Translations under genes and position numbers: made by a program
From: Lytechinus pictus
Taxonomy: Eukaryota
Length of the DNA stretch: 64,000 nucleotides
Direction: 5' to 3'
NCBI RefSeq assembly: GCF_037042905.1
Contig: NC_087254.1
Span: 32,240,001 to 32,304,000 of the forward strand
Notes under the pieces: model-generated
Told to the model about the DNA's origin: nothing
The model's input: only the letters and a program-made list of their open reading frames with translations
Databases searched by the model: none
Shown here: in pieces, positions 4,831 through 55,775 of the stretch
Numbering within the stretch: the stretch's first letter is position 1
Layout: each line of letters opens with the position of its first letter

Positions 4831-5589
4831 AATTATGTTTCTGGCCAGAATGCTTTCAGCATGCACTCAAGAATTACACTCAATGGGACCTTTAACACTT
4901 AAGTCAATTCTTGGAGGCTAGTCTTTCAGATTATATTGTTCATGCATCAATCTGCATTCTGCAAGCATTTTGGAAAGAATTTTAGTCATTTTTTGCTAGG
5001 GTCATGGTTTCATGTCCCAGCACGGTGCTATAATAGACAACTTACACTTATTTTGCACATTGCAGTTCACTTCTCTTTTCCACAACTGTAGTCTTTTTGG
5101 AATGGAAAACAATTCTACGTCTTGGGGAATCATGCACCCCAAAATCCTGCACGTCTTTTCTTCTGAGAGTTGTTATAGCTGCATGGTCAAATCCTCTTTT
5201 TCTGGGTATTTTCTGGTTTAGGATGAGTTCCTATATGGCAAGCCTTGTACATAGGGTGCCTATGTAATAATGCTGTATTCTTGAGCTTATTCTTTCTGCT
5301 ATATAATAGAACATTTCATTTTCACATATTAATCTTGGAATAAGGAAACAAACTTTAGAAAAAAAATATAATAATCAAAAGTATTTAACTTCCCTTGGGG
5401 AGCTCAAGTGTCCTATCAACCTTCTAGCAATAACTGTTTGTACATCTCACACCAAGGAGCTGCTCACACCTATGGAATGTCTAAGACCACTGTCTATATG
5501 GGCACTGAGTAGAAAACTAGAATCTGACATTTCCTGAGTGATAATTAACTTTTTTTCATTTGCTATTCCTTTAAAAAAAAAGATCACTT

Positions 5590-5975
5590 TAGAAGCCACG
5601 CTCACCTCAACATGCAAAGAGCTCGAGTCAGTGGTTTTACCTGAAGTACCAAGTGTTGTCATTTTAAGTGTTGGGACCAATGATGTGCGCAACAAACATT
5701 CTTTCGCCAAAATGACCAAAATCACAGAGGACATTTGAAAGTGTGGATGGAGGAGGCCAATTTTACCTGGAACCTGGCAAATATAATTCTCAGATGAGGC
5801 CTGTTGTACAACATGCAGTAAAATTGGAAACAATTGTTCGATATAGCTGACTCTGCGCCTCAAGAGGGACGATCACCTTAATTTGCAAAGAGCTCGAGTC
5901 AGTGGTTCTACCTGAAGTACCAAGTGTTGTCATGTTAAGTATTGGGACCAATGATGTGGGCAACAAACATTCTTC
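5590..5975 (+). pseudogene. Duplicated SGNH-esterase-like fragment (LINE ORF1 type)
   Basis: PSVVILSVGTNDV occurs twice, at about 5613-5702 and 5885-5972. Confidence 0.5.
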
Positions 5976-6522: not shown

Positions 6523-7620
6523 ATGCAGAAATCGGATATTGACTTCACGTCAATAGATTCACATGTAGCAGCCAAGTATAACCTTGGCAAAATCAGAGGT
6601 GGACAAAGTGGTGTGAAATGGCATGAAGTGTGTGCAGTGCTTTACAACCAAAAGAAAAGGCGCTGTATACAATACATAACGAGTATGTCTATTGGATTGG
6701 ACTGGATTGTGTTTACTACATTATAACTCTTATCACAATTTCAGTCATTCCAAAAAGGGCCAATGCTGGAGTGAGATCATCCCAGGAATGAAGGATCACC
6801 TGCCAAACATTTGTGGTCTCCTGGATCTTCTTCTGGCTGTCCTCGCAAGCTCAGCAGATGCTGAACGAGGATTCAGCCAACTGAATCTAGTGAAAACCAA
6901 CTTAAGGACATGCCTTGATTTCCTCCCGCCTTGATTTCTGTAATGCCCTTTTGTTTAATTTACCGCAGGCTCAGTTACATAAGCTTCAGAAGCTTCAGAA
7001 TGCAGCTGCTCGCATTGTCACTTTGTCAAGTAAACGCTCTCATATCACTCCCATCTTGTATTCGCTGCACTGGCTCCCTATCAAAAATCAGATTATCTTT
7101 AAGATTTTGCTGCTTGCCTTTCATAGTATTCTTGGATCAGCACCACAATACAGTCTTTCATTTATCAATCACTACAGACCAAGCAGGTCTTTGCGCTCAT
7201 CCACCTCTGGCTTCCTTGTCATTCCAAAAGTTTCAAAAACTTGGGGGGAAAGATCATTTGCTTTTGCATGCCCCACTTTGTGGAATAGCCTTCCTGAAGA
7301 CATAAAAAAATGTACCTCTGTCGAAACTTTCAAAAATCTTGTAAAAACTTTTTTATTTAACTCTTAGCTCTTTATGCGCCTTGAGCACTCTACAGAGTGG
7401 ATTTGGCGCTTTATAAGTCACATTATTATTATTATCATTATCATTAAGGACTGCATGATGATAGGGTAACTGATCAATTGATAACATTTTGCATTCACAG
7501 GATATAAACTTCTTCAATCCAGAGCCCTGTATCAGCCTGTGGCAGTCTGGTGTGTCAGGTCGAGACGCCCAGACAGAACATGTAAGTATTCCTCATCACG
7601 AGCAACCTGATTCTTCTTCC
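6523..7620 (+). pseudogene. hAT transposase C-terminal dimerisation-domain remnant split by an L2 insertion
   Basis: LLDLLLAVLASSADAERGFSQLNLVKTNLR before 6915; frame resumes after 7446 (DDRVTD...FNPEPCISLW). Confidence 0.7.
6915..7445 (+). mobile_element. 5'-truncated L2/CR1-group LINE
   Basis: SRLDFCNALL...LQKLQNAAARIV...HITPIL.SLHWLPI...LWNSLP; short 3' UTR and (ATT/ATC)n tail; ttaaggac present on both flanks. Confidence 0.85.
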
Positions 7621-9499
7621 TCTTCAGACAGTGAGCCTGAGGTCATGATGGAAGTAGAGATTCTGAGTAAATAAACGGTTTAAAGGTCAAGTCCACCTCA
7701 GGAAAATATTGATTTGAATCAATAGAGAAAGTCAAGCAAGCATAGCACTGAAAATATCATCAACATTAGATGCAAAATAAGAAAGTTCTGACATCTGAGG
7801 CATAATAAAAAAATGACTGTTCAGATAATTCTACACTTTCCCCGACTGTCCCCCTTGTATGTATGCTGGTGATTGCTGATGCTGAATGTATATTTTTAAT
7901 TTGATTTCCAATTTTTTCCATATGTATTTTTTCTTGTTTTACTGGGAGCTACAACTCACAAGTTCTTATGAACTTTTCAGTAGTTTTCCCTTTTTTCTCT
8001 TTTACATGTAATTTTCATTCTTGTACATATTGTATACTGTTATTAGGTGGTCTGTCTATGACAGATCATCTCTTAATTTCGTCAGAATTTTCTTTCTCTA
8101 TTTATTTATTCGCACCTATGTTTGTCGCCAACTTTTCTCCGAATTGGCTGAATCAATTTGGCTGATTTTTCTGTCATATATAGTCTATCAGAGACGCCAT
8201 ACTAAGCTTTTCAAGGTCATCTGGTCATGATGACGTCATCTACGCGCCATTTTGTAAAATTCTTTATTTGATCATATCTACATAACAGATTATCAATAAT
8301 CAATCATAATCACATGAAATAAACTTTAGGTCAAAGTTCAACAAGCGATGTTATCAAAGGTCAGGCAGAGGTCATGATGTGCTTTATAATAGAACATTGG
8401 TAATGAATATCAAATATAACAAAGAGTTTTCGGTCATTACAAAATTAAGAAAACATATTTCAATAATCTAAGACTACGTTGGTTAGACTATACAAGCATG
8501 GATATAAAATATTAGGAAACATAATGTCTGTGTAATTTTTGCATGCAGTTTATAGTAATATAACACTCTGCATTTCATATTTTTGTAAAACTGATTACCG
8601 GTATACTTTTAAACATGCTTGGATGTTTGAGTAAACTCACAAACTCCAGATAGTAAATTGGTTGAAAGAAAGTTCAATGCTCTTTTGTCCATTGACACAA
8701 CTCCTTTTGTTTAGAGCAAATGACCACACACCCATCACCTGTTTGCGCAGATTGATGTGGTAGCCTTATCCTTGCATTATGTTTATAATTCCTCCTAAGA
8801 GACCATAATTATCCTTGCATTGTGTTTATAATTCATAATAATGAGGTATATTTTATCCTCCATCCAACCTTCTCCCCAGATAATAGCTCCCTGACTTCAG
8901 ATGCAAATAAACTTTCATTTTTTTTATGCTCCACCCTTCTTTCCTGATTAGTCGATACATTGTTTAACTCCTCCCCCCTAATGGTGCGAAACTAAGAGTT
9001 GTACCCCCAAAATAATTAAGAAAGGACTTCTCTTCTCCGTCTCTTGACGAGAGGACACTGCGTGCTTGGTCTCCCTCGCCATCCCTCTTTAGGGGTTACC
9101 ATATGGCCTTTGTTGGGGAGTACCTAATATTATAACAGCCTTCTTTTATAACCAGCTATATTTTATACTGTATACATATATATATTTTATATATATTCAT
9201 CTTTGATTGGTATTTATCATCTTTGGAATAAATACTAATGAACTGTAATCATTGTGTGGCAGACTATTGATTTGTCTCATCATTCTTGTGACACTGAACA
9301 ATCACCATGCTACTATAATATTTCGAGTGTTACAGTAAGACTTACGAGAACTGTAAGGCGTAATATACAGTACAAGCATAAGCCTGGGTTCTAAATCAAC
9401 CGTGTACTTCTGAGACTTTCCATGCAGAAATCGGGTATTGACTTCACATCAATAAAATCAGAGGTGGACAGGGTCATAAGATGGTTGGTCTCTGGAACA

Positions 9500-10792
9500 T
9501 GTATGGAGTGTATGGAGTTTCCAACAACAGAGCCAATGTCAAGAAAGCATTACTCGATGCTGTGGCTGAAAAGAACACATTTAGTTGGGTTTCTTGCTTT
9601 GCACACAATCTGAAACTAACAGTGCAACATGCAGTGAAGACGCATAAATTTCCTGAGGCGGCCTCAGCGGAAAACATACGACGTCAACATGAGGTTTTCT
9701 GCGAGTGGTGCAGAGAAGTTGGAAGGGTTGCATCATCGTATATGGAGTTTCCGACAACAGAGCAAATGTAAAGAAAGCATTACTCGATGTTGTGGCTGAA
9801 AAGAAAACATTTAGTTGGGTTTCTTGCTTTGCACACAATCTGAATCTAACAGTGCAACATGCAGTGAAGACGCATAAATTTCCTGAGGCGGCCTCAGCGG
9901 AAAACATACGACATCATCATGAGGTTTTCTGCGAGTGGTGCAGAGAAGTTGGAAGAGGGAAGGGTTGCATCATCGTATGTGGAGTTTCCGACAACAGAGC
10001 CAATGTAAAGAAAGCATTACTCGATGCTGTGGCTGAAAAGAAGAAATTTAGTTGGGTTTCTTGCTTTGCACACAATCTGAATCTAACAGTGCAACATGCA
10101 GTGAAGACGCATAAATTTCCTGAGGCGGCCTCAGCGGAAAACATACGACATCATCATGAGGTTTTCTGCGAGTGGTGCAGAGAAGTTGGAAGAGGGAAGG
10201 GTTGCATCATCGTATGTGGAGTTTCCGACAACAGAGCCAATGTAAAGAAAGCATTACTCGATGCTGTGGCTGAAAAGAAGAAATTTGGATGCACACTATC
10301 TGAATCTAACAGCGCAACATGCAGTGAAGACGCATACATTTCCTGAGGCGGCCTCAGCGGAAAACATACGAAGTCAACATGAGGTTTTCTGCGAGTGGTG
10401 CAGAGAAGTTGGAAGAGGGAAGGGTTGCATCATCGTATATGGAGTTTCTGACAACAGAGCCAATGTCAAGAAAGCATTACTCGATGCTGTGGCTGAAAAG
10501 AACACATTTAGTTGGGTTTCTTGCTTTGCACACAATCTGAATCTAACAGTGCAACATGCAGTGAAGACGCATAAATTTCCTGAGGCGGCCTCAGTGGAAA
10601 ACATACAATGTCAACATGAGGTTTTCTGTGAGTGGTGCAGAGAAGTTGGAAGAGGGAAGGGTTGCATCATCGTATATGGAGTTTCCGACAACAGAGCCAA
10701 TGTAAAGAAAGCATTACTCGATGCCATGGCTGAAAAGAAGACATTTGGATGCAAACTATCTGAATCTAACAGTGCAACATGCAGTGAAGACG
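9500..10792 (+). repeat. Tandem array (~5.5 units of 223-237 bp) of a hAT transposase catalytic-core fragment
   Basis: The unit encodes VSDNRANVKKA...SCFAHNLNL; unit markers at 9524, 9754, 9991, 10228, 10451, 10688. Confidence 0.9.
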
Positions 10793-11620
10793 CAACGGAA
10801 CGTATTGCTGAAAATATCTCAAAATATAATAAGAGAAGGAGTATACTGTATGTAGCTTATAACAGCAGCTTTTCAAAATCATCAGGAGACATAGGTCCAC
10901 TTGGATGTGGTCACCATGGTAACTAATAAAGTATTGTTGATACATAGGCTCTTATTCTTGTAAATGTTGTGTTGTCATGGCGCACATGCTTCTCCCAAGT
11001 GTCTACTTTGAAACCATCAAGAGTTGATTGTACACATATTAATGAATTGACATTGAAATTGTTCCATCGGTGCATTATCCATCATTGGTATGAAGGGGAT
11101 GAGTAAATTGGGAATTAATTCCCATCCTCTACAACAATGAATAATTACATTTTCAGTTTGAAAAGTCATACAAAATCCAAGGTTATCTTTACAGCTACAA
11201 TAAATAAAGCTTAAATAACTTGATAAAAAAACTTATTCTTACAAATATATTTAACTGCTTTGCCATCCCACTTGTGCCATCTGCTTGTAGCAACTGAAAT
11301 GGGTTGGGTGGAATGCACATGCAGCAAAAACACAGCAACCTGGATGGAAGGTTTGCTAACAATACTGTTCAAAGATTGGTTTCATACTTCGCGATGAACG
11401 AATGCCACCAACACTGAAAAGTGCAGTCTCATTTATGCACTTTCTTGATGGATACTGCTAAAAATAATAAACAGGGAATATCCGTCAATAGCCAGCTATC
11501 CACGGACTGCTAGTACTCAATATCTTCCAACTTAGGGGGAAAAAAAACACGTAAAAAAAAAATCTCATATAACATAGTCTATGGACCTTACTGACAATCT
11601 TCGTTGTAGTCCCATCTATG

Positions 11621-11817
11621 CTATCTCCTGGGGGTGACTGCCGGTGAGCGGGGTGCATTGAGATAGCTTGAGATGGCAGACTGGAGTGCGCTAGCCCGGT
11701 GGTTCTCCTCCTCTTGGTAGCGTGCGATGTCCATGTCTCGGACTCTCAGCTGCTCCTGTAAGGAATCCACCTCCTCCTGTTTGCTCCCTAACTCACATCT
11801 GTGCCTCCTGCTTTGAT
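11621..11817 (-). CDS. LRRC45: LRRC45 last coding exon
   Basis: ctttatag/ DQSRRHR...[49 protein letters not shown] at 11623-11621. Confidence 0.9.
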
Positions 11818-14800
11818 CTATAAAGAAATGAAAACAAAAAATCTCATATCGCTATTGCATATTGACATAAGACATATTGCATTTATGCTGTGGCTTATAA
11901 TCAAACAGCATGGTGTGCTTGTGTAGATATTGAAAAATATGAAAATTATATGCAGGACAGTCCATCAACTGGGGACAATTGACTATATTTTGTGATTTGG
12001 ACAAATAACCTTTGGTGATAAGCTAAAAAATTTCTACACATACTAAGCCAGGTTTAAGTCCATCTGTATCATTAATTGAACAGAGCGAACAAAATGATTA
12101 GTATTATAATTATTAGTCACTGCATCCCTAAATTGGCAACACACAGTAAAATCTCAAAATCACTGTTTTCACATACAGATTTAACATGTTTGTAAATTGT
12201 AACAACATATTTTATCAAATTTCTCATACATAGACTTCAAAAAGGAAAAAAAGCGATATGAGAGAAAAAGTAGGATACAGGCTGTCTATTGATAATGATT
12301 TAGTGTCTGTGCAAAGGCTTAACTTAACAATATAAGAACAAACAGACAAATCTCCAAAACATGTTTATCATCATTTTCAACTAAAAATTAATCTGCTCTT
12401 CACCAACGAAGCTAATAATACAGAGTTAAATTTGACTTTCAATAGAAATCAAAATATATATTTTACCTATGAGTTTTGCCTCTAGATCAGCTGCTTTCTC
12501 TTTGAATTCTTGTAAATGAGCGAGTTTAGACTCCATCCTCTGGACATCTTTCTGATGTTGAAGCTCTGCCTGGTGCACAGCAGATAGCTTCTCATTGTTT
12601 TTCCCTGCGAGCTCCTGATTAAGTGAAAAGAAAAAATATCTTGTACTTCAGGAAATAGCTATGACTTAATGAAGAAATTCCAATATATGTTGATGAAAAC
12701 AGTAGACTTTAGTCTGTCATGCAGGTTCAAATCAAAGTGAACTTTGAAACCACGTCACAAATTCGATATAAAAATTGAGCGAGACTTACAAAAGACACAC
12801 AAAAAAGATAAAAAAGCATTGAAACATCACAGCGAGAAAAAAAAATATGATGCTCTGTTTCTATTATGCCTACCATTCCATTGATGAAGGCTGTCATTAT
12901 CATCAACCAAATTTGTCAACAATTAGAGAGTCCACTGTTTATGTAAATCAATTCACATTAACAGAGGACTCTATTCATGGCAACAAGCATGAAATTAGCA
13001 CACTGTGATAGAGTCAACATTCAATAATGGACCCTTCCTCGGTATGTAGTACATGCTAAATTAGGCATGCGTGATTAATGCATGAAAATCTTCATGATTA
13101 AAGGGATGGTCCACGCTGGAGATATTTACATCTCAATAAATAGAGTAAAATTCAAAGAGCAAAATAATGAAAATTTGATCAAAATCGGATAGGGTTAGGG
13201 TTATATATAACAAATTCATTGAATTTTAAACATTTGCATTATTCCGTTGAAACAGTGCTAGGCATGTCTTTATGAATATTCATTAGGTGGGCTGATGATG
13301 TCATATCCCCATTTGTTCTTTTGTATTTTATTGTATGAAATTAGGTTAATAAAAAAACATTCTACCAAGAACTGAAACAATTGGATTGGCATGCTGATTA
13401 AGTGCATCAACTGCTGCAACTTATTTCATCATAATGGAGACACATCATTTACACATGTATAAAAAATGAAACATTTATGATATCACGTAATAACATAAGA
13501 AAAAGGAAAGTGGGGATGTGACATCATCAGCCCACCTAATGAATATTCATGACGATGTGCATATAACTATTTTCACAAAATATTGATAATCTTTAAAATT
13601 CAATAACTTCGTTCTTTGTTATCCGATTTCGATGAAATTTCCAGCATTTTGCTTTGTGAATTTTACTCTACTTATTTAGTTATAAATACTCTCAGCCTGG
13701 ACCATCCCTTTAAGGACCAAAACATTTGATATTGTGTCCCCCCTACTATTTTGGGTAGGGGGACGTGTCCCCCCCCCCCCCCTGGGATTTCCACCCATGC
13801 CCATTCTACAAAATGTTAGGCAATATTATGGAGAACAAAATTGAAGAAGATTACAAAGTATTGTAGGCCAATTCATATATTTTAAGTACCGGTAATCCAA
13901 AGACAAAAAAGAAGGCTTCAAAATTTTAACGTGTCCGGAAACTTACCTCCCCCCTCCTCCTATAAAATGTTAGGGGCCTAGGCAATATTAAATAGAACAA
14001 ACTTGAAAGTATTTTCAGCCCGGACCATCCCTTTAACAGTTTCAAAATCGACTTCATGAATTTGTGTCTTTGAGTCTGAAAATGCTGACATTAGTATGTT
14101 TATCTATACTGCACTTGTCCCATAAGGTTCCAAGGACAAACAATGCATTAATTTGAGATAGGTATTTAAAGGGTTTTTAATATTAACCTGAGTCATTAAA
14201 TAATGTTTGAACTTCAACCAACCTTAACAATTATTTGGGGCAAGCTTTCATCCACTCCTGTGGACTTTCTCAAGCAAATCGATTAGTCACACACACTGCT
14301 GCCTAATGTCTGTACTTCCATGTCTCTTGATCACTGGACCAAAGATGGGTGACAATGGATATCCAGACTCTCTCTTCAGCATTGCGTGTGACTAATCCAT
14401 TGGCTTGAAAAAGTCCACAGGAGTGGATGAAAGTTCACCCCAAATAATTGTTAAGGTTGAATTTTGAAACATTATTGAATTTATCATCCCCAATTGATGA
14501 AATATTTCTGTATTCACCTGAGTCATTTCCTGAAGATGTCTCTTGAGGGACTCGACCTCCAGTGTCAGGTTATTGTTACGAGCCTGTACTTCAGCTACCA
14601 TCTGACTCTGGTTGCTTGCATGCTGATGGATGTCATCTTTGGCGTTCTGCAGGACTCGGATCTTGTCTTCCAAAAGCTTGCTTCTTTGATGCTGTTAACA
14701 GATGAAATAGACAAATGATAAAACCTGAAACAAGAGCTGTACAGTATTTGGATTGCCTAAAGTTGAAGATGAAATGGCTCTCTCAAATTGATAGCTTATT

Positions 14801-17800
14801 GTTCTTAATCGGTTCACAGACTAGTCATAAAAACTACATTGGGCTTTAAAATACTGTAAAAGATAGACAAAGTCTCTATAAACCATCTGTTCCATTTGTA
14901 TTGGTGCACACAAGCCAATATAATCACATTGTAACATCAGTTGGGGAGTGACAAACGTGGGTAAGTGCCTTGTATAAGGACCTAAGGACCAGGTGAGATT
15001 CGAACCATCGACCCTTGGTTTAAGAGTCAAGCGACTTAACCATAACACCACCAAAACCATATAAATCTTACCTCTTCATCCCTAACTTGTTTCTTGGTAG
15101 CAAGGATCTGTTCCTCCAGCGAGAGTCTCTCTGTCAGCTGCTGTGCTTTGACCCTGCTCAACTCCTCCTCTATGCCTCTCCGATGGTCCTCCAGACGATC
15201 GATGCGATCCTTATACGCCCTTTCACTCTCCTCGAATCCTTGACGAAGGTGCTGGATCTCAGAGCGATGTCGTCGATCGATGTCCCCCACGTCATCCCGG
15301 TGTTTGATGCGCTCAACCTGCAGCAGTTCTGAGAGCAACAATATAATCAATTAAATAATGAACTGATAAAAAGACTGTCTTAATAATATTTTACAAAACA
15401 CGTCACCAAACCATGTATTATTTTAATTTCAACAAACAGAAAAAGTAAGCTCTTAATTTCACTCAATACCATTATAAAGTCTAGAAATCAAAGAAAAATC
15501 CTCTACCAGAAAAAAATTGCAACATCAGGTGAAAACCCGCTGCTACTTCTTGAAGAAAATACCTGTGCACTATGTCCTGCTTCTGATATTTACAATTTTT
15601 TGCATCGCAATTGCAATGCATACAATAGGTACACATTTTGATAATTTTGTGAGCAAGATCATAAACTAGTACATCAAGTAGTCATGCAGGGCCTGACCTT
15701 TACTTTTTTTTAGGGAGCCAGCCGGGTTCCTCAACCACTTCTTTAGGGAGCCCGCAAGGTGTTCAGGGAGCCCAAGTTAATGGTCAGTATTAAAACACAC
15801 CAACACAATTCCTTGTTTTTATAATCATCAATACCAGGTGTATTATCATTATTAAAGTAAATGTGAGGATTAACTGAACTGAAGAATTAATCTTACAGCA
15901 ATTGACTTTTGTGAAGCCCTTTTGCTACAGTAACAGTCTAACATTGGACTTCAGGTTTCATCAGAATAAGATATAGCACTGGATAAGTCACTCTTCCTCG
16001 CTTCGTCTGTTCAAATTTATATTCATTCAATCTTCAATATTGCTCAACAGCTTGAGCAAGCAATAATTAATATCATTTGCAGAGAGGAAAATAAATGACA
16101 AAAACTATTGAAAATGCGTTTACCACTAGGAATACACTTTTCTTTCAGAACCTTCCCAAAATATAATATTTTCGTTTGCTCAATCTGTTTCATTCCATAT
16201 TCAATTTCTACTCAAATGGACATTCATCTCATCCATTATTTCAGAATTGACATCTTTGTTTACATTAAGCTCAGCCACAGGCACTAGGAATGCCCAAGGG
16301 GCTCATACAATGACCCCCCCCCCCATGGGGACATACCATTGTAACCAAGCAACACAGGCTCAATGTTGACAGTTACGAGGTCACTCACTGTTTTTACAAT
16401 GAACTTTCTTGGCTGATACTAGAAAAACTAATACCCCTTTCACAAACCCATCCTCAAATTATCCCACTAAGAGTAATGCGGATAATTCAATAAAAATTGC
16501 ATTCACAAACTCTGAAAATAATCCGCACTATTTTTTTACGAGCGCCCGACCTGAAAAAGGCGGATAATTGTCATGGCAACTGCACACGCCCCCTCCGATG
16601 GGGTTGTGTTGGAAAAGGGTGACCTTTTGTGACCGCACCATGGCAATTATCCGCATTACTTTGGAAATGCGTTCACAAAGCCAAAATCTGGTCCCGATGC
16701 TGCTATTATGCGGATAATTGCAGCATCAAAATAATGCGGATAACTCTGGTCCCGCTCCGATTTTACAACCAAATTATGCGGATAATTGGGTTTGAGAAAG
16801 GGGTATTAAGGAGCAAGCCAGGCTTTTTTATTTACTTTCTAAGGAGCCCGCCAAGGTTTTAGGGAGCCAATTGCCATCGGGCTCCTGCTATAAAGTCGAG
16901 CCCTCAATAGAGACCTTTCGTTTTCTGTGACGAGCCATGTGGACGTACGAGATTAAGGAATTTTGGAACGCTGCGCATGCGCGAAGTAATCTGTGACGAG
17001 CCTTCTCGTTCACTGCCCAAATCTGTGACTCGTATTTGAGGGTTTTGACGTTCGGTGTCATAGTGCTCGAACGAGCGCTAGTTCGTACATGATGACGTCA
17101 TCCAAGCTTAGCAAAAATGAATGAAGCCGCATCAACATTCGAGTTTCGTTGATTCAGCAGAGCTGGTAAACTGCAAATTACTGCTTGTTACCAGCTTATC
17201 CATTACATTTAGTGTGTCCTGTTTTCAGACACTACATATCCGATAGGTAATTGATGTTCTATTTCCAAACAACTGTATTTTTTCGGCTTTTTGCGCAAGA
17301 GTGCAAATGTTGCACCCACAGTCGCCCCACTGGTTCGTAGCGTGATGCTACGCCCGATTCTCCGGCCGAGCATTGGCCCACGGCCCGCTCACTATCACGC
17401 TGGTATATGCTGTGGCCTGGTACAGGTACGTCGACTTAAATCGAAATGTTTTCATCAATGTACTAAAGTGATACTGAACGAGCAGTGTCACCACTTCCGG
17501 TGAACTAGGACTACGTTGCAGTCGCAGACAATCGAAAGCTTACTAATGACGTGGAGCTCATCTGGCACCTCGCAAAAATTTTTACACAATTTTCAATTTC
17601 AGCCCAGTTGACACTGTAGTGAATTATATTCGTGACAGAAATTAAAGGCCAAGTCCACCCCAGAAAATTGTTGATTTGAATCGATAGAGAAAAATCAAAC
17701 AAACATAACGCTGCAAATTTCATCAAAATCGGATGTAAAATAAGAAAGTTATGACGTTTTTAAGTTTCGCTTATTTTTCACAAAACAGTTAAACGCACAA

Positions 17801-20800
17801 CTCAGCGATATGCAAATGAGAGAGTCGATGATGTCCATCACTCACTATTTCTTTTGTTTTTTATTGTTTGAATTATACAATATTTCAATTTTTACAGATT
17901 TGACAATAAGGACCAACTTGACTTAACCATAAACTGTTAAAATAATGGTAATTCCACATGTTCAGGGAGTAATAAAACTTTGTTTCACATGACAATGGGG
18001 AGAAAATTAGAATTTTTCATATTTCATATAATAAAATACAAAAGAAATAGTGAGTGGGTGACGTCATCAGTCTGCCAATTTGCATACCGTCCAGGATGTG
18101 TATATAACTGTTTTTGTGAAATTAAGCAAAAGTTTAAAATGTCATAACTTTCTTATTTTACATCCGATTTTGATGAAATTTTCAGTGTTTTGCTTGTTGG
18201 ATTTTTCTCCTTTTATTCAAATCAACTTTTTGGTGGGGTGGACTTGTCCTTTAAGAACAGAAATGAAATTGATGAAGAAATGATAGAGAAGAAGCATTAT
18301 TATGATTTATGAATAAATTTCATATAAATAAGCATAAATAATTTTCTAGTTAAAATTTCTAAATTCTGTGAAGAACTTTGCTGAACCTCATGTAGCTCTC
18401 AGATGGAACAAAAAAAATCAAAATCTGTCAACCAATAAATAAGAAGCATTTTTTGGTGTTTTGAAAAATATGCATAAATTAGCATATTTAATGAGTTTTA
18501 AAATTTTGTGTAGAAATTTTGTATCCCCACCTAGAGCTATCATATAAAGCAAAAAAATTGAAATTGATCAACAAGTGAAGGAGAAAAAGCATTTTCTGTG
18601 ATTTATTAATAAATTTTGCATAAATTAACATACCAAATTTTCAAAATCAAAATTTCAAAATTCTGTGTAAACGTTTGGTGAACCTCATGAAGCTCTACCA
18701 GATGGATGAAAAAAAAATCAAAATCGGTCAACAAATAAAGAAGCATTTTATGTGAATTTAGAAAAAAAAACATAAATTAATTTCGCATATACTATTTTTT
18801 ACTAACATAAAAAATTTTCTAGCCAAAATTTCAGAATTCTATGTAGAAGAATGGTGTACCTCACGAAGCTCTACCAGATGGAAGAAAAAATATCAAAATC
18901 GGTCAACAAAGCATTTTTTGTGAATTTTGAAAAATAAGCATAATTACTAAATTAGCATAATAATTTTTCTAGTCAAAATTTCAAAATTCTGTGTAGAAGT
19001 TTGGTGAACCTCATGAAGCTATACCAGATGGAAGCAAAAGAATCAAAATCGGTCAACAAATAAAGAAGAAGCATTTTTTTTAAATGCACATAAATCAGCA
19101 TATCTTTTTGTGAGTTTCAAAATTCTGTGTAGAAGTTTTGAATCCCCCACATACCTAGTGCTATCATATAAAGCAAACAGAATTGAAATCGGACTTGAAA
19201 TGACGAAGAAGAAGCATTTATTAAACAATTATTGTATAAGTACAGAAATCTTTAAAAATACACAATTTATAATAAATCATGGTAAATTTCAGAGCGAATA
19301 GTCGAATATCATAAAAATGATTGAAAAAAAAGAGTGACAATTGGTAAAAACGATCAACCCTAGTTGTCTGTTTCTCAGCATGATTATCACACTTCACCAG
19401 TTCAGTATTCCAAACGTTGCAGCTACTACCAGCCAGTGCCACACTAGAATTAATTCCCACGATACATTGCGATGACACAACAAACATAATTAAAAAAGAA
19501 CCTTTTCAAAAAAGGAAAAAAATAACAATGATACAAACCACTCAAACAATTTCGTACAACACCAATATCACATATTACGCATGTTATTTAAGCAAGACAA
19601 TTACTAAATCCACTAAAGACAAGTAAAGCGCAATATTACACAAACAATCATATCAAGATATCATTTAAGAGAGATACTTTCCAATTTCCATCCAATCCTT
19701 CTCTTTCTCCCCTTTTCAGACTTAGTTTCGCTTGTCAATCCAGCACTCCACTAGCCTCTGGTCGAGGCCCTGGCTGCTTCCCGAGCGAAGCGAGGGATAT
19801 CCTAATTCGCGAAGCGAATTAGCCTGGCGCGAGCCAGGGCCTCTGGACATCTGTACCGAATTTCACCGACTTCCTTTTGTTTCTTATTGTTTTACCAATA
19901 TTCCGACGGTCGGTGAAAATCATCCAATGAGATCGTGGACTGCTTTGACGTCATATTGAATTATTCATGAGCTCATCATGAATTCTGCATGGAGGAAAAT
20001 GGCGACCCGTGGATTCTGGGCAAAGAGTGACAACGAAATATCAAAGAGCATTGAATATGCCTCTAAAATACTGAAAATTAACCAGTTTAAGGATTTGCAA
20101 GTTGATGCAATTAAATATGCACTGAAAGGACGAGATGTGTTTGTAAATCTACCAACTGGATATGGAAAAAGTGTAATCTTTCAAGCGATTCCACTTTGCG
20201 TCGACTATCTCCGACTCCGCGGTGTCGGTGAAAGTGAAACTGAAGGAATTGGTGCTGGCCGATCTCCCGGGAAGTTCCGGGGCGGTGATGGGTCGGTTAT
20301 GGCTACTAGGCCTAGTATTAGTAATACCACTCGTTGTGGCATTTTGCTAGTTATCTCCCCTTTAGTGTCCCTGATGAGAGACCAAGTGAAGTCGTTGAAG
20401 GATCGCGGGCTTCATGCCATTTATGTTGGGGACGCTTCGTCACAAGATAAATTTTTAGAAGGTATGATTTTGATTTTACTTAGCTTAACTGGGCCCAGGC
20501 CATGCCAAGGCCCAAGCAAGGCATTGATTCTGCTCTTCCAATTCCAGTTCTGACTTGTTCAATTGTCCGCACAAACAATCAATTTTAAACAGCCATTTTG
20601 AAAAGATAACAAGAAAAGTTCCATCAATGTTCTGTTGACCATTACTATAAAAAGAATTTCATGTTTCAAGTTGTTACATGTAGGTGCGTAAACTTACCCT
20701 AACAATTTGAAACGTGAGTCTCTTTTTAATTTTTATTTCACAAAATATAGTTTCAGTTAATAATGACAATGTTCCTTAATTATTATGAGTTAGTGTACCA

Positions 20801-23800
20801 AATATCTCATAAAAATTTGAAAGAAATATGGGCTTTCCTGGAAAAAAACCCTTGGGCAGTTCTTTTCAAATTTTAAAAAGAAAAAATCAAATCAATGGTA
20901 TCCCATGTCTGCGCACCCATTCACTTTGCACACGATTCAGTGATTTTGATGAGAAAGGCTGCATTTTCTGGCCGTCACATGGAATGCAAAAAATCACTAT
21001 TTTTCCAGCATTTTGAGTCAGATTTTTAAATGAATATATTATCTGTCATAATATATTGCATGTGTAAAATTTGTGTTCGTTGCGTATCTTCTTTTACTAG
21101 AATCGCGCAGATACGCGTGTGCGCAGACCAGGGGGACCACGCAGACTTGGATGAACTTGCCATACAGTTTTGTGAAGTAGCCATAAGGCTTTAAAATCAA
21201 AATTTTAAATTCATCCGACTGACCGGACAAACTACCCCCCCCCCCACCATCTACATACGCATGATAAAGTCTACATGATGATGTAGTTTTTTAATATCGG
21301 TTGAATTGGTCTAAAGACTCTAAAATGCCAATTTGTCCAATTACCAGCTCGTCTCCTATCATTTGCTATCCGCATGGTCTAATTGCCATTTCTTCCACCA
21401 CCATTTCGTCTTACATGTATAACCAGCTTAATAGTCCAATAGCCATTTAGTCCCTCATGGCATTTTACCCTTTGGTCTATAAATTGGACAACATGTAAGT
21501 TATAATTGGGTGAAATGAATGAAAATAAAATGAACATAGACCAACTGGTTATGAGACCAAATGTTCATAGACAAATTGGAGATTGGATGCAGATGAGTTG
21601 GTATCTGTGACTGTAAGGTTAATTTTGCAGGATAGACCGGAAGTGGTGCATGATTATTTCTCTTCCCTACAATAATTATCATGATGATTTTCCCCCTTTT
21701 TAGCACAGTAAAATAAAACAGATTTATCAGAACTACTGTACAATACATGTGGAAATGATATTGGTCTTGTACATGTATGTCAAACAATAATTTGATGAAA
21801 TATCAAATTACTCAAACTATTATATTTCACACAGGTGGAATTTCATATGTGTTCATGAGTCCGGAGACAGTATTTGGACGAGGTTTCAAGCTTCTTGATA
21901 GCAGCTTCGTGAAGGAGAACTTATGTGCAATTGTTGTAGATGAAAGCCACTGTATAGTGAAATGGTATGTTTTTTTTCCTGTTCCTTTATTAAAATGAGA
22001 ATTGATTTTTCTTGATTGTTGCATCATGCAGTCAAAAGATTAAATGGGCAATCCAAGGCTGAAAATTATCAGACAGATTAACATCTGTCAAACAATGAAA
22101 ATTTCATCAAAATTAGACAAAGAACAAAGGAATGAACAATATGTACACTGTACAGTATTTACTCAATATTGATATTGAATTTGTAAAAGAATCTTATTTT
22201 CGTTTGATCAACTCTGGTGCACAAGTTATGAAATGGGCATAGTTCTACTTTTTTTTTTCTGCACATTCAATTTCAGGGGACAGAACTCAGATAGACTGAA
22301 AGCCTTCCGTAGTGAATATGGACGTCTGGCAGAACTGCGTTCCATGGTGCCATCACAGATACCCGTGGTCGCCCTTACAGCCACCTCTACTATCGCAACA
22401 CGGAAAAACATCTTGACATCGTTGACAATGACGCAGCCAGCCTTAATTACCCTGTCCCCTGATAGGAAAAACATTAAGTACAGTGTAATGGATGTTCCTG
22501 AGAGTGACACTTCATGCATATTTGCAGAACTGTGCAATGAATTGAAGAGAGATGGCAGACAGACTGCCAGGACCATCATCTTCGCCCGCTCTCACAATCA
22601 GTGCAGCGATCTGTATAAGAGTTTTAAGAAGAAGATTAATGATGTGAATTTATTTGCAATGTTCCATCTTACCACAGAGGATTGTCGCAAAGAAGAAGTG
22701 CTTAAGTCATTTGGAGATGAAAACGGTTCCATCCGGGTGTTGTTTGCCACGATGGCATTTGGAATGGGAGTTAATTGTAGAGGAGTTAGGAGAGTGTATC
22801 ATCTTGGCCCTCCCGAGGACATCGAAGATTATGTTCAAGAAAGTGGACGTGTTGGACGAGATGGAGAGGATAGCCATGCAGTACTGATTCTGTTCAAGGG
22901 ATGGAACCGGTGTAAAGTTTCACCAAAAATGAAGGAATATGTGAAGAACGAGGAGATATGCAGGAGGAAGTTTTTGATGGAAACATTTGAGGAAGATGAT
23001 AGAACATCATGTAAAATTATTCCCCATTCATGTTGCGACATCTGTGCTCAAAAGTGTGAATGTAGGGTTGATGATGCCCATACCATCCCCTTTAAATACT
23101 GTGATACAGTTCAGTCCCAGTCCCAACACATGACAACTTGCAGGGATGTGTCGGATGAGGAAAGAGAAGTTCTACTAGACCAGCTTCTGTTATTAAGAGG
23201 TGAAGTTCTTGCGCGAGTGTCTGGGGCAGGTTACACCTTGGCAGGCGCAGATGTGACTTCTGGTATACCGATCAGTGAAGTCGAGGCTCTGGTTAAGAAT
23301 TGTGACAAAATTGACTCGCTTAGCACTTTATGTAATCGTTTTAGTTTTTTTGGTCATGAGGAAGAAATTTGGATTGTTCTAGAGGATACTTTACCCCCAT
23401 CTCAAACTTCTCAATCCATTGCATTACAAGAATTACACCCCACAGTAATTGATGATATAATTGATACAGATGAGTCTGATACAAATGATGAATATGCAGA
23501 AGCAGTTCTCATGTCAGATGCAGAATCTGATAATTAATTTGGATTGTGGTTCATTCATGGACTTTTCCCTTAAGGATATTTGAATCTTAAGACAGTGAAA
23601 CTGTATTTCTAAGACATTATTTACACTGATGTCATGTATGTCTTGTAATGTTATAGCCCTTCAAAATTTCAGTTCAAACATTCAGATTTAATTGGGAGGG
23701 TTACTTTACCGCATTTAGCATTCAACATACATCATTGCTGGTACGTTTTCAATTTGATACATATGTTGCATCATTTGGGTATAAAGGCTGTATGACGTCG

Positions 23801-26800
23801 CAATATTTATAAATACAATGGTAATATAATGGTAAAGTATATTGCATAAATTTTGTGCTAATTTGGCTTGATAAAATACTCATTGATGTGAAAAAATTTG
23901 CATGTACATGTAGTCAGGTGAAATGCTAATGTTGTATGTATATGTTTGCGAAAATAATCCACAGCAAACTGTATGCATGTATTGTGTTAACACTTTGATT
24001 GCTCATACATTTTTGCATTACTCTAGAAAGGTTCATAAAGCTGTAAATCTGTTTTTGATAAATACATTATGATTACACTTTATATGAATTGAATTGTACC
24101 TGAAGAATGAGTATAACAAGCATGAAACTGAAATCCTTTAAAACTTTTTAGCAACACTAAACATGTATATAATGAGCAAGCTGGTGATGTCATTGATCCA
24201 TTTTTCTTTTGTTTTTTTTTAAACATAAAACATTATTCATATTTATACAAATATATAGCTGTGTATTTATTGTAATTATGTAAGATTTACATGTATGCTG
24301 CATCTTTCAAGCTATGTATTCATCCCCTTCAGGAGGAAAGGTAAAATATTGTTCATTACACACATTCATTCAAAAATACAATTTTAAAAAGGATCGCAAT
24401 AAGTTTTATCATGCAGATACATGTGTGTGATATAAATGTTTCACCTGTAATCATTGTTCAAGTTAAAGGAACAAACCTGTACATGTACATGAAATGAAAA
24501 TTCTATTTCTTTTGGTTATGTACATTGCAAACCGGTACATGTATTTGGCCTTTTTTTTTAATGATGAAAAAATATGGCACGCATTATGAATTTGCCCCTT
24601 TTATAAAGAAGTGTGTATTTTTTGGTACACTTTAAATTAACAGGTGGTTAACAGTGGAAAGAAGCTACATGTATGGAGGGATATGTTTGGTGAGATTTAC
24701 CTGAATTTTCAAGTGTTTATGCATTAGACGATTACAAGCAAAAGTGGACATTTTCAAAAAAATTATATTGGCTCTTTCTCAAATCTCGATCATTTTTCTA
24801 TCAAAACTCAAATGGAATTTCATAATACAAAGGGGAACATTATTACATGTAGCCAGAATTTGTTTTTCTTGTAAATGTATCTCCTTTCTGTTGGATAATC
24901 TAAAGGTCATCATTTTAAATCATATTGTAAGAATATTTTCAAATATGAGTTCATTTTACATTGCTTGTATATGGATATTCCAGATGTCACTCTGTAACCG
25001 TCACTCCATACATGTAACTGGGTATAGGTTTACGTTTTAAGTCGTAATTGACAAATACACCAATTTTTAATGTAATGCAGCATATTATGCTAGAACAACA
25101 GAGAATCCAACCAATAACTCAAACTTGTGATAGCCATTTAAAGTTCAGAGTTTGAGGGATATGTTTTATCCTCAAAAATGCATATCCATTATATATGTAA
25201 CCATGTTTAATAATATTCATACAGTATCTCATTAATTGAGTGGATCGCTGAAACAAATGTTATTACTTGTATTTTTAAAGTGAGTTTCAGGAAGTACTGT
25301 AGGGCACCATTTCTTTGCAAATGACGATTTAAATATGGGTGATAAATTTGTTTGAATGCTAAGATTTGTTTCTGAATATCACTCTGTTTGTTTGGAACTG
25401 CCCCATTTATACATGCACATTATTAAATGTTAAGTTCTACCAACTTTTCAGGCAATGAAATAAATGGAATATTTAATTATGTGAACTTCCGTGTTACAAT
25501 CCTAACATGTTATTGGCAAATGCATATTTTTCATGTTTCTGATATTTTGAGTTTTGGGATTCCGACTTGCAGTTGCATCATCTGGACTGGATGGTGAAGG
25601 AGAGTGGGGTTGGTATGGGCACATGTTGAGGAGGGATGGCAGGCATGTTACAAGAAGGGCTTTTGAGTTTGAGGTGGGTGGTTCGAAGGGGAGATGATGT
25701 GGAAGAGGCAAGTGGAGAAGAGTAGGAGGGTTGGGTTGAGGATGAAAGATGCACTGTATCAGGCAAAGTGGAGGGAGGGGGGTAAGGGCCATTGCTGCGA
25801 GTGTGAGGTGAATCAGGCCATACCTGTTCACAGGGACAATCCCGGATTTAAAACTTACTACTAACATTATCTGTATAACCCATATGTTTAAACTTCAAAT
25901 CCACCCTACCAGAAATGGAAAGAGAGAAATCAAGGAACACAATTAAAGGGGTACTTGAGGCTGAATCACCCGTTGTGATTCATGAAGATTTTGCAAAATT
26001 TGAATATTTCTTATTTTATAATACAAAAGAAAGAGTAAGTATATAAAAAAACCATCTCATTTGCCTATCACTATATTGTACATACATGTACATGTAAAGC
26101 TTTTTATGAAAAATAAGCTGAACTTTCAAATGTAAAAACTTTTTTTATTGAAATCAGATCTTGACAAAATTTTCAGGATTAAGCTTGTTTGATCTTTCTC
26201 TTTGTATTCATTCCCATTTTTATGCCATTGACATGCTCTTTAACCCAAAATAGACTGGGCAATTTCGACGCCAAGAAGACGGGGGGGGGGGGGGGTTGAT
26301 TAATCCCCCCTTATGATTTCGGCTGTCAGTTGCACGATCGCAACAAAAATTGGCACGCTCTTTACCTGTGGCATAATCTACACAAGTATAAGATCCAATT
26401 CAGCAAAAAATCTCATTGCTAATAAATTTTGCTAATCTATGCATAAAATCAAGTTTGCTCTAATTAAATAATAATGCTCATAAAATTCTAACTTTTGGTA
26501 CACAGACTCTTTATAGGCATCTGATCAAATGTGCTTTAAAAGAATTTCAACATCACTTTTATTTTCTTATTCAATTTATTATTTTCTAAATTTATTAAGT
26601 ATTTCTTTGTCTTAAGACTTGTTTTTTTATTGTTTTTTCATTGAAAATTGTCTGGGACTTTATTTTGATGGAATTAATTGATTTTAATCGGTAAAATGAA
26701 AAATAATGACACATTAATTAATTTTTGTTAAAAACACTTTGCATTGGATTTTTTCCATTTAAAAATATTCTGTATCCTGGCATATTTTCTCCCATCCTAA

Positions 26801-29800
26801 TATGTTTTCCATATTATTCCATCATTTTTTCATCTACCTAACCACAAAATGAATCTGAAGCAAGACATGTACTGTAATCCTGTCTTCAAAATGACATGCA
26901 CATTAAAAACTCAAACTATGTCACAGAACAAATTGAACAGAGGCAGTGTGATAAAGTTGATAAAGGTTCATCTTTCTGTACCATTTAATAAAAATATGAC
27001 AAATGCTTCATCAATATACAGGTACACCTTGGTACAAACTATGTTATGAATTGTCCTCATCTTTTTTTCACTGTTTAAAATGGAAAAACAAATGTTATTC
27101 CATGTAAAGGAAGACAAATATGAATACGGATAAAATTACTGACAAGATAAAGAGCAATAAGAGAATACTGTCATTCCCTTTGAAAGTTGTCTACATATAT
27201 TGCAATCATATCATGAATACTGATGGAGATACTGTTAAGAATCAGTGCACTAACAAGAACAATTGTACATCCCAGAGAATATAATATTGCAGTTCTTTGT
27301 AAAGTTTGGTAAAACATATTGCAAAAAAGATGATGATAAATACGTATAAAGAGACTGACAAGATAGAGCAAATTGCAAAGGCAATAATATATGTACATCT
27401 TCAGTAGCATCACCTTTACTTTCTTCATGCATGTATAATAGAAGATAATAACCCTTCATATCTACAATACCAATCAACAGATGTATGTGAAATATGATAT
27501 CAGTGAAAAAACACAAAATTATGGAAGGAAGTGCTTTGTTACAACTTTTTGGCATCAAATGAAATGTTTATATTGCATAAATATCAGCTGTATATACTGT
27601 ATGCACATAATCACAAATCTATACATGTATAACAAATTTGTTAGCTTTACAAAATTTACTGAAATTGAAAGAACACAAATTCATATTAACTTTGTACTGC
27701 ACGAAGGGGGGGGGGGGGCTTGCAAGCCCTCCTCTCAACATTTTCTACGCGTTTCACTTTGAAATTTTGCTGAATTTCTTAACTTTGAATCTTTTGAAGT
27801 AATTTTTTTTAAATATTGGACTGTGGTCATGGTGCTGGGCAGTCTTTTGAATGTAAGTGCCCATCATTCTGAAAATGGCGTAAAACCATGATTCTAAATG
27901 TATATCAAAGTGTATACAGAGTTTTCTCACCTAACATGATTGTTTTCAATTTAGCTAAAAATAAATAGGATACAGAGAATTTCAGTAAAATAAATCTTCC
28001 AAAATTAACAAGAAATGTATGTATAAGAAATTTATGAAACAATAATAGTATGAGATAAATTATTACATCCTTTTTTTGCCAATCTGTGTTGACTCATGAA
28101 ATCCTAATATATATAAAGAAAAATCATCAGTGTTAACATGTACCGAAAAAGAAAGAGACAACTGAAAGAGCATTTTAGTGAGTAAAGACTAATCAACTAG
28201 TAATAGCCTCATCTTATTTGCTTTAATGAAATTCCAGTGATGCATGGCAAGGAAGTAGACCTACGTTTTGATTGACCTTTAGAGTGTTGTCCATTCCATT
28301 TGAAATCAGTATACTTGAATCATGACGACAACTGTTGTACAACTAAAACATTTAAAGCTAAATGATAATAGTTGCTGTAAAACACTAATTTCGTGAGAAA
28401 GTCTGTAAAACCAAGGTTAAGTAACTATATCATCGTGGATGTAGATCTGGTACAGTTACATAAACTGAACTTCGTGAAATCATAAACTCTAAGCTGAAAT
28501 ACGATCACACTGAAGATCGCCAACACAGATAGGCACACGTGGGACAGTGTATTTTTATTGCTGGAATAAAGACCCGATGAAAGTGACGGAATCCGCGCTT
28601 ATTTTGCTTATTACTCAGCAATTACACAATTTCTTCCAGAATCCTTTGGCACATATTTTTTATTCATACAAACAGACACTTAGGTGGTCATTATATTAGA
28701 TTCTGTAAAGTCATTTTGAGATTGTTACCAGAACTGGAATTTATCTTTAATGTCAATTTGAGAAGTAAAACTATTTTCAAATCTTGTACATTTACAGATA
28801 AATCAAGCTTTTTTAGGACAAACAATTTAAATACATTTTCCACGAGGAATGCTTCAGCGCAACCAAGAATGTGAAATGATGAAAAATGTTCATGTTGGCA
28901 AAATGGCAAAAAAGCTAAGTGTCACATATACATCACACATTGCCAAATAATGATAAAGCTTTATATCACTAAATAGAAGTTCAAAAAATAAAATACAATA
29001 CATACATATGCACAGTTAATGTATATCCAAAGATAAATTTCTTTTATGAAATCAACTTCCAATGAGGTGCTCGGGTTGCAGCAAATAATTCCTATCACCT
29101 ACTCAAATGAAACATTGCTTTAAGAAATAAACCAAAAGCTGATGTGAATGTTTAAATACTAAATTTGAAAAATTCCTTTAAAAAAAAAATAAGTGAAGCT
29201 GTGTGCATTGTTCACTTGGCTGGTTCATATCATATACACACCTTTAGTGGAACAGTCAGTTATTCTTGCTGATACAATTAAAAACACAGTTATAAATAAT
29301 CTTATATATATATATCTATATATATGTATATAAAATGTCATACAGAAAATATAGGAACTATTCTCATACTTGTAATGTTACATGAGTTAAAAAATTTCTC
29401 AGATATATCATGCAGAATTATGTTCTTGAAACAAGCCGTGAATGCATGTACCATCATCAGCCATATGTCACCAACTGTTCCCCTGCAATGTAAGGCGGCT
29501 TTTCATGTTAAAGAGCATGCACTTTACAGAATATAAAATGAAATGTACTTTCATATAAATCATGGACACCAGTATATACCATGATAATATAAAATTTTCA
29601 AAATAGAAAAGATAGTTGTATCATGACAATTTTCAAATGTCTTTGTTATGTATAAGATAGTAGGATACCTGTAAGCATTTCACTAACATGTCATTAACAC
29701 TGTAAATAAACATCTACCAGCCAAGTAATAAAGGTAGGTCAGATATGAAGAAAAATTCATTAGAAAGCAAAGTCTTTCAACTTTTTTGACATCCATGATC

Positions 29801-55234: not shown

Positions 55235-55317
55235 GACTCCAACATGTCCAATGATGAAGAAGTATACGTACTTTAATATGTCAAAGTATTTTTTAAAAAC
55301 ATCATCATGGAGTCCTC

Positions 55318-55766: not shown

Positions 55767-55775
55767 GGAGTCCTC

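Follow-up and report, generated by a model that had tools for sequence, protein, structure and literature searches.

Hairpin-forming ends with a fixed stem register in an AcademH-type transposon of Lytechinus pictus and related elements

Results

An AcademH-type transposon and its genes

The window analyzed here is a stretch of 64,000 nucleotides from Lytechinus pictus (NCBI RefSeq assembly GCF_037042905.1, contig NC_087254.1, positions 32,240,001 to 32,304,000 of the forward strand), and our subject is the transposon at positions 19752-36882 of this window, in particular its ends. It is a single intact element of 17,131 bp with TAGCC...GGCTA ends. Its terminal inverted repeats (TIRs) are 111-112 bp long and 100% complementary (19752-19862 versus 36772-36883), and the target site duplication (TSD) of 9 bp, GCACTCCAC, abuts the element exactly on both sides. 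Between the TIRs lie a helicase gene and a transposase gene (Table 1). The helicase has Pfam matches to DEAD (E 2.3e-09), Helicase_C (3.2e-16) and RecQ_Zn_bind (8.5e-08), that is, the RecA-like core joined to a RecQ zinc-binding module by which the RecQ family is recognized, and its nearest solved relatives, by sequence and by predicted fold, are BLM, WRN and bacterial RecQ. No Pfam match to an RQC or HRDC domain was obtained in it; residues 300-390 make up a helical domain in the confident predicted fold, and in Foldseek the protein aligns with the cores of RecQ and BLM over 380-395 columns. An NCBI L. pictus protein is identical (100%) to the large helicase exon. The transposase carries CxxC...CxxC motifs in its N-terminus and a C2H2 finger in its DUF6589 exon, and a run of N (assembly gap or mask) occurs inside its gene region at ~31030-31170. 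None of the open reading frames (ORFs) scanned encodes an HUH domain.

According to PMC10045372, which cites Kojima 2020, the duplication is 9 or 10 bp in AcademH versus 3 or 4 bp in AcademX, and a helicase plus a 9-bp duplication is the AcademH signature in print. Both are found at 19752-36882, which thus matches that signature. A DEAD/Helicase_C helicase beside the transposase, the 9-bp duplication and an animal host are likewise what the element shares with the AcademH lineage of the Academ superfamily, as Kojima 2020 is cited in PMC10045372 and PMC10799480. Judged by its RecQ-like helicase, its DUF6589 transposase, putatively of Academ type, and its 9-bp duplication, the element is therefore classed as an AcademH-type transposon, in agreement with an earlier reading made from the letters of the window alone (hereafter the sequence-only reading), which had taken it for an AcademH-type element with its own helicase.

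Folding of the end

The sequence-only reading had also proposed that 19761-19848, which is the core of the perfect 111-bp TIR, folds into a T in which an outer stem of 12 bp encloses two hairpins tipped by GCGAAGC. The positions given for the outer stem, for both hairpins and for both heptamers (19785-19791 and 19809-19815) proved correct, a scripted check returned Watson-Crick pairs throughout the pairs listed, and the structure is mirrored at the right end, where the TIR is 100% complementary and the heptamers recur at 36819 and 36843. The heptamers conform to GCGNAGC with a C-G closing pair. As single-stranded DNA, 19761-19848 has a minimum free energy (MFE) of -26.6 kcal/mol versus -15.6 +/- 2.6 kcal/mol for dinucleotide shuffles (z -4.27), and 1 of 200 shuffles equals it. 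Across the 64 kb, 5,789 windows of 88 nt have a mean of -6.3 kcal/mol (sd 3.4). Both TIRs are among the ten of these that reach -26 kcal/mol or lower, and the other eight all fall in three palindromic regions (~49.46-49.49 kb, 55.72-55.74 kb and 59.16 kb). Strong palindromes were noted in their own right at 49340-49540 (-28 kcal/mol, 88-nt windows 49457-49490) and at ~59150-59250 (-31.5 kcal/mol, window at 59159).

Folding with DNA parameters upheld the nested palindrome but only part of its detail. The outer 12-bp stem and hairpin 2 are robust, being present in every low-energy fold, but hairpin 1 is marginal. On the top strand the T shape reaches -23.0 kcal/mol versus -26.6 kcal/mol for the MFE fold (a gap of 3.6 kcal/mol), which keeps the outer stem and hairpin 2 and replaces hairpin 1; on the bottom strand the T shape is the MFE fold, at -26.1 kcal/mol. 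A row of four hairpins (the fold-back at 19754-19768, hairpin 1, hairpin 2 and the hairpin at 19823-19838) is nearly isoenergetic with the T shape (-22.2 versus -23.0 kcal/mol), and fold-backs equivalent to 19754-19768 also exist in the related elements L008 and L091 described below. Nearest-neighbor parameters miss the measured stability of GCGAAGC, which has a melting temperature of 76.5 C and resists nucleases (PMC13037366). The motif GCGAAGCGA is seen 5 times versus 0.02 expected, and forms a direct repeat 24 bp apart.

Several further observations concern the surroundings of these motifs. GCGAAGC itself occurs 10 times in the window versus 2.3 expected, and a GC-rich patch at 48874-48945, outside any definable element, holds two more GAA-capped hairpin motifs, GCGAAGCGA and GTGC-GAA-GCAC. 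A CRE-like TGACGTCA lies at 19946-19953, between the left TIR and the helicase ATG, with another inside the TIR of L091, and a palindromic ATTCATGAGCTCAT lies just inside both TIRs (19963-19976 and 36722-36735); these may be promoter or regulatory sites.

Table 1. Positions of the features of the transposon, of its folded end and of the non-autonomous elements in the window
Feature	Position	Strand	Description and basis
TSD, left copy	19743-19751		9 bp; direct read, and unbiased scan for TAG...CTA pairs between perfect 9-bp repeats
TSD, right copy	36883-36891		9 bp; direct read and the same scan
Left TIR	19752-19862	+	111 bp, begins TAGCC; folds at -27.3 kcal/mol
Right TIR	36772-36882	-	Exact mirror of the left, same folds; complementarity and folding
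Outer stem, 5' arm	19764-19775	+	12 bp, starts at base 13 of the element; pairing check
Outer stem, 3' arm	19832-19843	+	Arm base repeats the terminal motif, GGCCTCTGGA versus AGCCTCTGGT, 8/10 matches at position 87
Hairpin 1	19779-19797	+	4 bp, tandem G.A, GCGAAGC tip; weak, -2.8 kcal/mol alone
Hairpin 2	19802-19822	+	Perfect 9-bp stem, GAA triloop closed by C-G; -7.7 kcal/mol alone
Alternative hairpin 3	19823-19838	+	CCTGGC-GCGA-GCCAGG, -7.2 kcal/mol; competes with the 3' arm of the outer stem
Possible terminal fold-back	19754-19768	+	GCCTC/GAGGC, -4.5 kcal/mol; competes with the outer stem for the same 5' arm
Extra inverted repeat	19861-19918	+	10 bp, just inside the TIR, before the helicase start; L008 has an 11-bp hairpin at the equivalent spot
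RecQ-like helicase gene	19978-23537	+	Exon ORFs 19978-20553, within 21777-21998, and 22233-23537; Pfam domains, relatives
DUF6589 (putatively Academ-type) transposase gene	29760-36029	-	Several exons; Pfam DUF6589, E 6.7e-26 and 6.9e-08
Non-autonomous TAGAC...GTCTA element	54387-55234		9-bp duplication
Non-autonomous TAGAC...GTCTA element	55318-55766		9-bp duplication
Non-autonomous TAGAC...GTCTA element	55776-56236		9-bp duplication
Non-autonomous TAGAC...GTCTA element	56344-56791		9-bp duplication

Related elements and their ends

A HMMER search with the helicase exon returned 325 proteins at E <= 1e-30, and identity to the query is 30-47% among the 150 listed. These homologues were taken as AcademH-type because of the gene layout in the loci retrieved around them (labeled L001 onward): helicase and DUF6589 genes are arranged convergently in genomes of echinoderms and molluscs as well as in ENA assemblies, and DUF6589 homologues convergent to the helicase were found in six other loci (L004, L005, L007, L008, L091 and L093). 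In L001-L003, L009 and L010 the contigs are too short to reach an element end. The window and all eukaryotic loci were scanned for TAG...CTA pairs with a perfect 9-bp flanking repeat, and the true elements recovered are three autonomous ones (L. pictus, L008 and L091), four copies of a miniature inverted-repeat transposable element (MITE), a MITE in L008 and a mini-element in L001.

The L008 element (8827-17049) has TAGAC ends and the duplication GTGTGAACC, by which its termini are verified. Its left end consists of TAG, 7 bases and a 14-bp outer stem around a perfect 9-bp stem whose GAA loop is closed by C-G, the design of hairpin 2, and folds at -28.9 kcal/mol (z -4.3). At its right end the inner hairpin has been lost by a 15-base deletion and the 14-bp outer stem is still perfect; between the two ends the stem shows a compensatory change from G:C to A:T at a non-CpG position. 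The L091 element (8942-18208), with TAGCC ends, the duplication AGTGAAATC and a perfect 104-bp TIR, has its tip confirmed by a second copy, L092; here TAG and 9 bases are followed by one hairpin of simple form, with 16 pairs and a single bulge (-22.6 kcal/mol, z -4.1). Two further left ends have tips that are only inferred because their partner ends are missing: in L005 (at 8787) TAG and 9 bases precede a 13-bp stem from base 13 with a spacer of 56, the same figures as in L. pictus, and in L093 (at 8864) TAG and 8 bases precede an 8-bp stem from base 12.

Non-autonomous elements extend this series. In L. pictus a TAGAC...GTCTA MITE of ~450-850 bp is present in at least five copies at 54387-57014, each with a 9-bp duplication; twice, two copies occupy the same target site, so that GGAGTCCTC and GCGAGGACT are each present three times. 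The two ends of this MITE share only TAGAC, yet each has a 10-13-bp stem from base 12-13 with an insert of 45-53 bases. As the shared sequence is only 5 bp, standard TIR finders would miss the family. The L008 MITE (17521-19034, 1.5 kb) starts TAGCCTGC, has the duplication GTATAATGG and adjoins the L008 AcademH element. The L093 MITE (13366-14246, 880 bp), inserted in another AcademH copy, starts TAGCCTGCG and has an 8/9 duplication; its ends contain GCGAAGCC three times, including a GCGGC-GAA-GCCGC hairpin. A mini-element of 52 bp (TAG...CTA, L001:205-256) has two arms of 20 bp separated by 12 bases, with the exact 9-bp duplication CCACCGCAC; it lies upstream of the helicase exon of the closest relative among the matches listed (47% identity).

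Some candidates and neighbors do not belong to the series. A 220-bp inverted repeat in L005 (7130-7350 / 20391-20612) was considered as the AcademH TIR and rejected, as it belongs to an outer element, the likely tip being 8787, and GGGGCGTTTA repeats in the same locus were rejected as an end signal because they occur only on the helicase side. The AcademH copy of L005 is adjoined by a Helitron (Helitron_like_N and PIF1) and has a reverse-transcriptase element inserted in it (2059-5826, 14402-16378), and the L008 element is flanked by 330-bp inverted repeats of another element (7181-7512 and 19024-19352; 97-98% complementary). A scan of metagenome contigs with a 20-sequence AcademH helicase alignment gave only relatives at 24-37% identity, taken as bacterial RecQ genes; there was no match in DUF6589 alignment scans of genome and viral contigs, in a scan with the helicase of a contaminated metagenome-assembled genome, or in a search of phage DNA.

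A shared layout of the ends

All verified TAG...CTA ends with 9-bp duplications, which come from three sources and are unrelated in sequence, have one layout: TAG, ~8-10 free bases and a long stem that begins at base 9-15. Stem length ranges from 7 to 17 bp and the spacer between the arms from 2 to 90 bases, and the insert often has hairpins of its own. Table 2 lists the nine end types, for which only verified termini, autonomous and non-autonomous, were used; the left ends of L005 and L093 were kept apart. In the same sequences, the probability that a randomly chosen position has a perfect stem of at least 9 bp with its 5' arm at bases 8-16 is 0.015, and for at least 12 bp it is 0.0035. Six of the nine independent end types reach at least 9 bp (binomial ~1e-9), and the other three have 7-8 bp in the same register. 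Folding z scores of the listed ends lie between -2.3 and -6.2 in 16 of 17 cases, the remaining one being -0.4.

As controls we used nine ends of two unrelated TIR families of the window, namely a small CAACC MITE and a TTAA-flanked MITE family whose ends are unstructured; they give z from +0.5 to -1.7 and stems of 2-5 bp. The TTAA-flanked family starts AGGNCAAGTCCACCCC, has TIRs of ~160-180 bp and was seen at 7680, 17642-18256, 33992, 37801-38391 and 40850-41431. Chance TAG...CTA pairs have stems of 3-6 bp, with one pair at 8 and 9. The layout is therefore specific to this group of elements and not general to the TIRs of this genome.

Table 2. Stems at the nine verified end types
End type	Perfect stem (bp)	5' arm from base	Remark
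L. pictus AcademH	12	13	
L. pictus MITE end 1	13	12	
L. pictus MITE end 2	10	13	
L. pictus MITE end 3 (54387)	7	13	Plus an inner 8-bp stem
L008 AcademH	14	11	
L008 MITE left	9	9	
L008 MITE right	10	12	
L091 AcademH	8	13	Hairpin extends to 16 pairs with one bulge
L093 MITE	7	15	

Two finer features accompany the stems. First, most ends have a second, directly oriented copy of their ten terminal bases at the base of the 3' arm (7-9/10 matches, combined p 0.004). Complementarity from arm to arm is perfect over 12-14 bp, and the terminal repeat matches the 3' arm at only 6-9/10. Because the terminal motif recurs, the 5' arm can pair either with the tip, as a short fold-back, or with the 3' arm, as a long hairpin, an arrangement open to two readings: a conformational switch, or a protein-binding motif in triplicate. 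Second, hairpins of the form C-GAA-G with a stem of at least 2 bp were counted 6 times in 1,500 nt of distinct ends, always on the 5'-TAG strand and never on the other, versus 0.23 expected (Poisson 1.6e-7; polarity p 0.03). They are carried by 4 of the 12 ends scored, with two in the L. pictus AcademH, one in L008 and three in the L093 MITE, and their absence from L091, L005 and the L. pictus MITEs makes them an option, not a rule. Hairpins with TTC loops are as sensitive to nucleases as single-stranded fragments, unlike the GAA form (PMC13037366). As TTC loops are thus without the resistance of the GAA type, the strand polarity is meaningful for a fold of a single strand.

The comparison bears directly on the T shape. 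Had related helicase-encoding families lacked such stems, the idea of the sequence-only reading would have fallen; instead L008, L091 and several non-autonomous TAG...CTA elements have them. What other AcademH TIRs share with the L. pictus end is a long stem, equally far from the tip but unrelated in sequence, whereas the T shape and GCGAAGC are not universal. L008 repeats a 9-bp inner hairpin with a GAA loop within an outer stem, but the L091 end is a single simple hairpin, and GAA hairpins are missing from the L. pictus MITEs. The search for covariation yielded one clean compensatory pair, in L008, while two further pairs, in the MITEs, lie at CpG sites.

Discussion

The layout of the ends is conserved across unrelated sequences, its GAA loops are confined to one strand, and it occurs together with a helicase gene. 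We suggest that the best reading of this pattern is selection for pairing within one strand at AcademH-type ends, a reading in which our confidence and our doubt are about equal. It is favored because the register of the stem is fixed while its sequence changes freely, and because the arms are perfectly complementary while the terminal repeat is looser. It is also favored because the inner hairpins are nested, the spacers vary, L008 shows a compensatory change and the GAA loops keep to one strand. Moreover, MITEs, which contain little beyond their ends, keep the layout at both of their otherwise unlike ends. Finally, a spacer of 2-90 bases suits a hairpin, not a dimer site of fixed geometry on B-DNA.

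However, several points weigh against this reading. Only some of the families show the T shape and the GAA loops. Covariation within families is thin, with the pair in L008 as the one clean case; the two compensatory pairs at CpG sites could reflect decay that happens to coincide, and the stems of old MITE copies are broken. Template switching can give quasi-palindromes compensatory changes without any selection. In L004, L006 and L007 the termini were not located and no comparable stem was found within ~1.2 kb upstream of the helicase, so these loci are uninformative or possible counterexamples. In addition, an array of transposase binding sites would also show its motif three times over, as the terminal motif is found here (direct, inverted, direct).

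A rival explanation takes this last resemblance at face value. The palindromes would then be direct and inverted copies of a motif that the transposase recognizes on double-stranded DNA, and the complementarity of the arms would be a by-product. The terminal ten bases with their direct copy at the base of the 3' arm and their inverted copy in the 5' arm fit such an array in most ends (combined p 0.004), as do the short palindrome that bases 3-8 make with the 5' arm at the tip, which could be a dimer site, the direct repeat of GCGAAGCGA 24 bp apart, and the CxxC...CxxC motifs and C2H2 finger of the transposase. On the other hand, an array does not call for arms that are perfect over 12-14 bp when the terminal copy is much looser, or for nested inner hairpins unrelated to the terminal motif. 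The single strand polarity of the GAA loops (6:0), the compensatory change in L008, and the L. pictus MITE ends that share only TAGAC and both keep the stem also speak against it. On balance, an array of duplex binding sites seems to us a possible explanation, but a doubtful one. The same kind of arrangement is known from En/Spm, the P element, piggyBac and the IR/DR arrays of Tc1 elements, whose terminal motifs recur within the end in direct and inverted orientation. In those elements the repeats are short and imperfect and are recognized as duplex DNA, whereas the inverted copies at AcademH-type ends are perfect over 10-17 bp, nested and fixed in register.

Another explanation is that the palindromes have no part in transposition, either as quasi-palindromes left by template switching during replication or gap repair, or as promoter or regulatory palindromes of the helicase that stand outside the transposition chemistry. 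The left TIR is indeed only ~115 bp upstream of the helicase ATG, a CRE-like TGACGTCA is found near the L. pictus end and inside the L091 TIR, and compensatory changes in the MITEs fall at CpG sites. Nevertheless, the same layout is present at the transposase-side end, which in L. pictus is ~740 bp from the ATG of the transposase gene, and in MITEs without genes, and the promoter-like motifs of L. pictus and L008 lie interior to the stem region rather than within the stems. A register fixed from the TAG tip across unrelated sequences would also be unexpected of a mutational by-product, and we consider this explanation improbable. Least credible of all, in our view, is that read-through RNA of the TIR folds and feeds small-RNA silencing or regulates the mRNAs of the element: the stems would also form in RNA and the TIR adjoins the 5' region of the helicase, but there was no Rfam match above noise (one match was sub-threshold), every RNA run contained at most 5% of the words sampled from the left end, MITE ends without a promoter keep the layout, and the recurring loop motif was characterized as a DNA mini-hairpin (PMC13037366).

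If selection does act on pairing within one strand, the end signal would be read, or would act, when the transposon end is unwound. The strand with its 5' end at the tip, once displaced, would snap into hairpins, some of them capped by very stable C-GAA-G mini-hairpins. The folded strand could then keep the end open and offer a structure-specific handle to the transposase or for processing of the second strand, and the RecQ-like helicase of the element would be the likeliest agent to unwind the end or remodel the fold. In a DDE reaction, the non-transferred strand is the one whose 5' end lies at the tip of the transposon, and this would thus be the 5'-TAG strand. We infer that the fold forms in vivo and on which strand, as well as that the helicase is involved; co-occurrence together with the known activities of RecQ makes a link to the helicase a reasonable supposition. 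Taken a step further, AcademH might read the shape of its end and not the sequence, with the helicase peeling off the non-transferred strand and the transposase or a flap-type nuclease recognizing its register-fixed hairpin; this is a tentative proposal, which we advance with less confidence than the pairing itself. The sequence-only reading had arrived at a related mechanism, in which the ends are recognized as extruded or single-stranded structure and this could explain why the element keeps a helicase. That idea is partly supported, in a weaker and more general form that requires a stem in a fixed register and not a T with two GCGAAGC hairpins.

Comparison with known systems helps to place the proposal. 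Parvovirus (AAV-type) inverted terminal repeats (ITRs) likewise have nested T- or Y-shaped palindromes with short arms of ~9 bp and loops of 3 bases, in a genome that encodes a helicase. In a parvovirus, however, the ITR forms the very terminus of a single-stranded linear genome, where it serves to prime replication and receives a nick from an HUH Rep protein, whereas at AcademH-type ends the stem begins 9-15 bases inside an integrated element (at base 13 in L. pictus) with a 9-bp duplication and a putatively DDE-type transposase, no ORF scanned has an HUH domain, and not all relatives show branching. IS200/IS605 elements (IS608) and Helitrons resemble AcademH-type ends in having subterminal hairpins conserved in structure, variable in sequence and placed at a fixed short distance from the cleavage site, and in Helitrons the 3' hairpin is paired with a Pif1-like helicase encoded by the element. 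They differ in their HUH transposases and asymmetric ends without TIRs or target duplication; in AcademH the TIRs are symmetric, the duplication is 9 bp and the transposase is of the DUF6589 type. As for the loop, the exact d(GCGAAGC) heptamer described in PMC13037366 is found twice per TIR and caps the 9-bp stem of hairpin 2, and C-GAA-G recurs in L008 and the L093 MITE; unlike this transposon end, the natural examples known are origins and promoters of single-stranded phages (PMC13037366). No report of a role for GCGAAGC at a eukaryotic transposon end was found in the literature searched. Nor was any description found of a hairpin-forming end layout, or of a register of TAG, spacer and stem, in the Academ literature searched, which did not extend to Kojima 2020, where a prior description of the family-level layout is possible.

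We know of no answer to the question of why AcademH or KolobokH transposons carry a helicase. The sole comment found in the literature searched, in PMC10045372, is that helicase or nuclease may relate to the length of the duplication. If AcademH does read the shape of its ends, this would explain the presence of a helicase in one Academ lineage and of a nuclease in the other (PMC10045372), and it would mean that a eukaryotic cut-and-paste element follows the logic of IS608, Helitrons and parvovirus ends. Should the structure indeed be recognized, AcademH would be, to our knowledge, the first demonstrated case of a eukaryotic DDE-type transposon whose ends are used as folded single strands. As an annotation signature, TAG, ~10 bases, a stem and a 9-bp duplication picked out non-autonomous AcademH-type elements that have almost no TIR and are easily missed. 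Moreover, a strand-polar hairpin layout at a fixed distance from the tip provides a concrete and cheap experimental handle on the question of the helicase.

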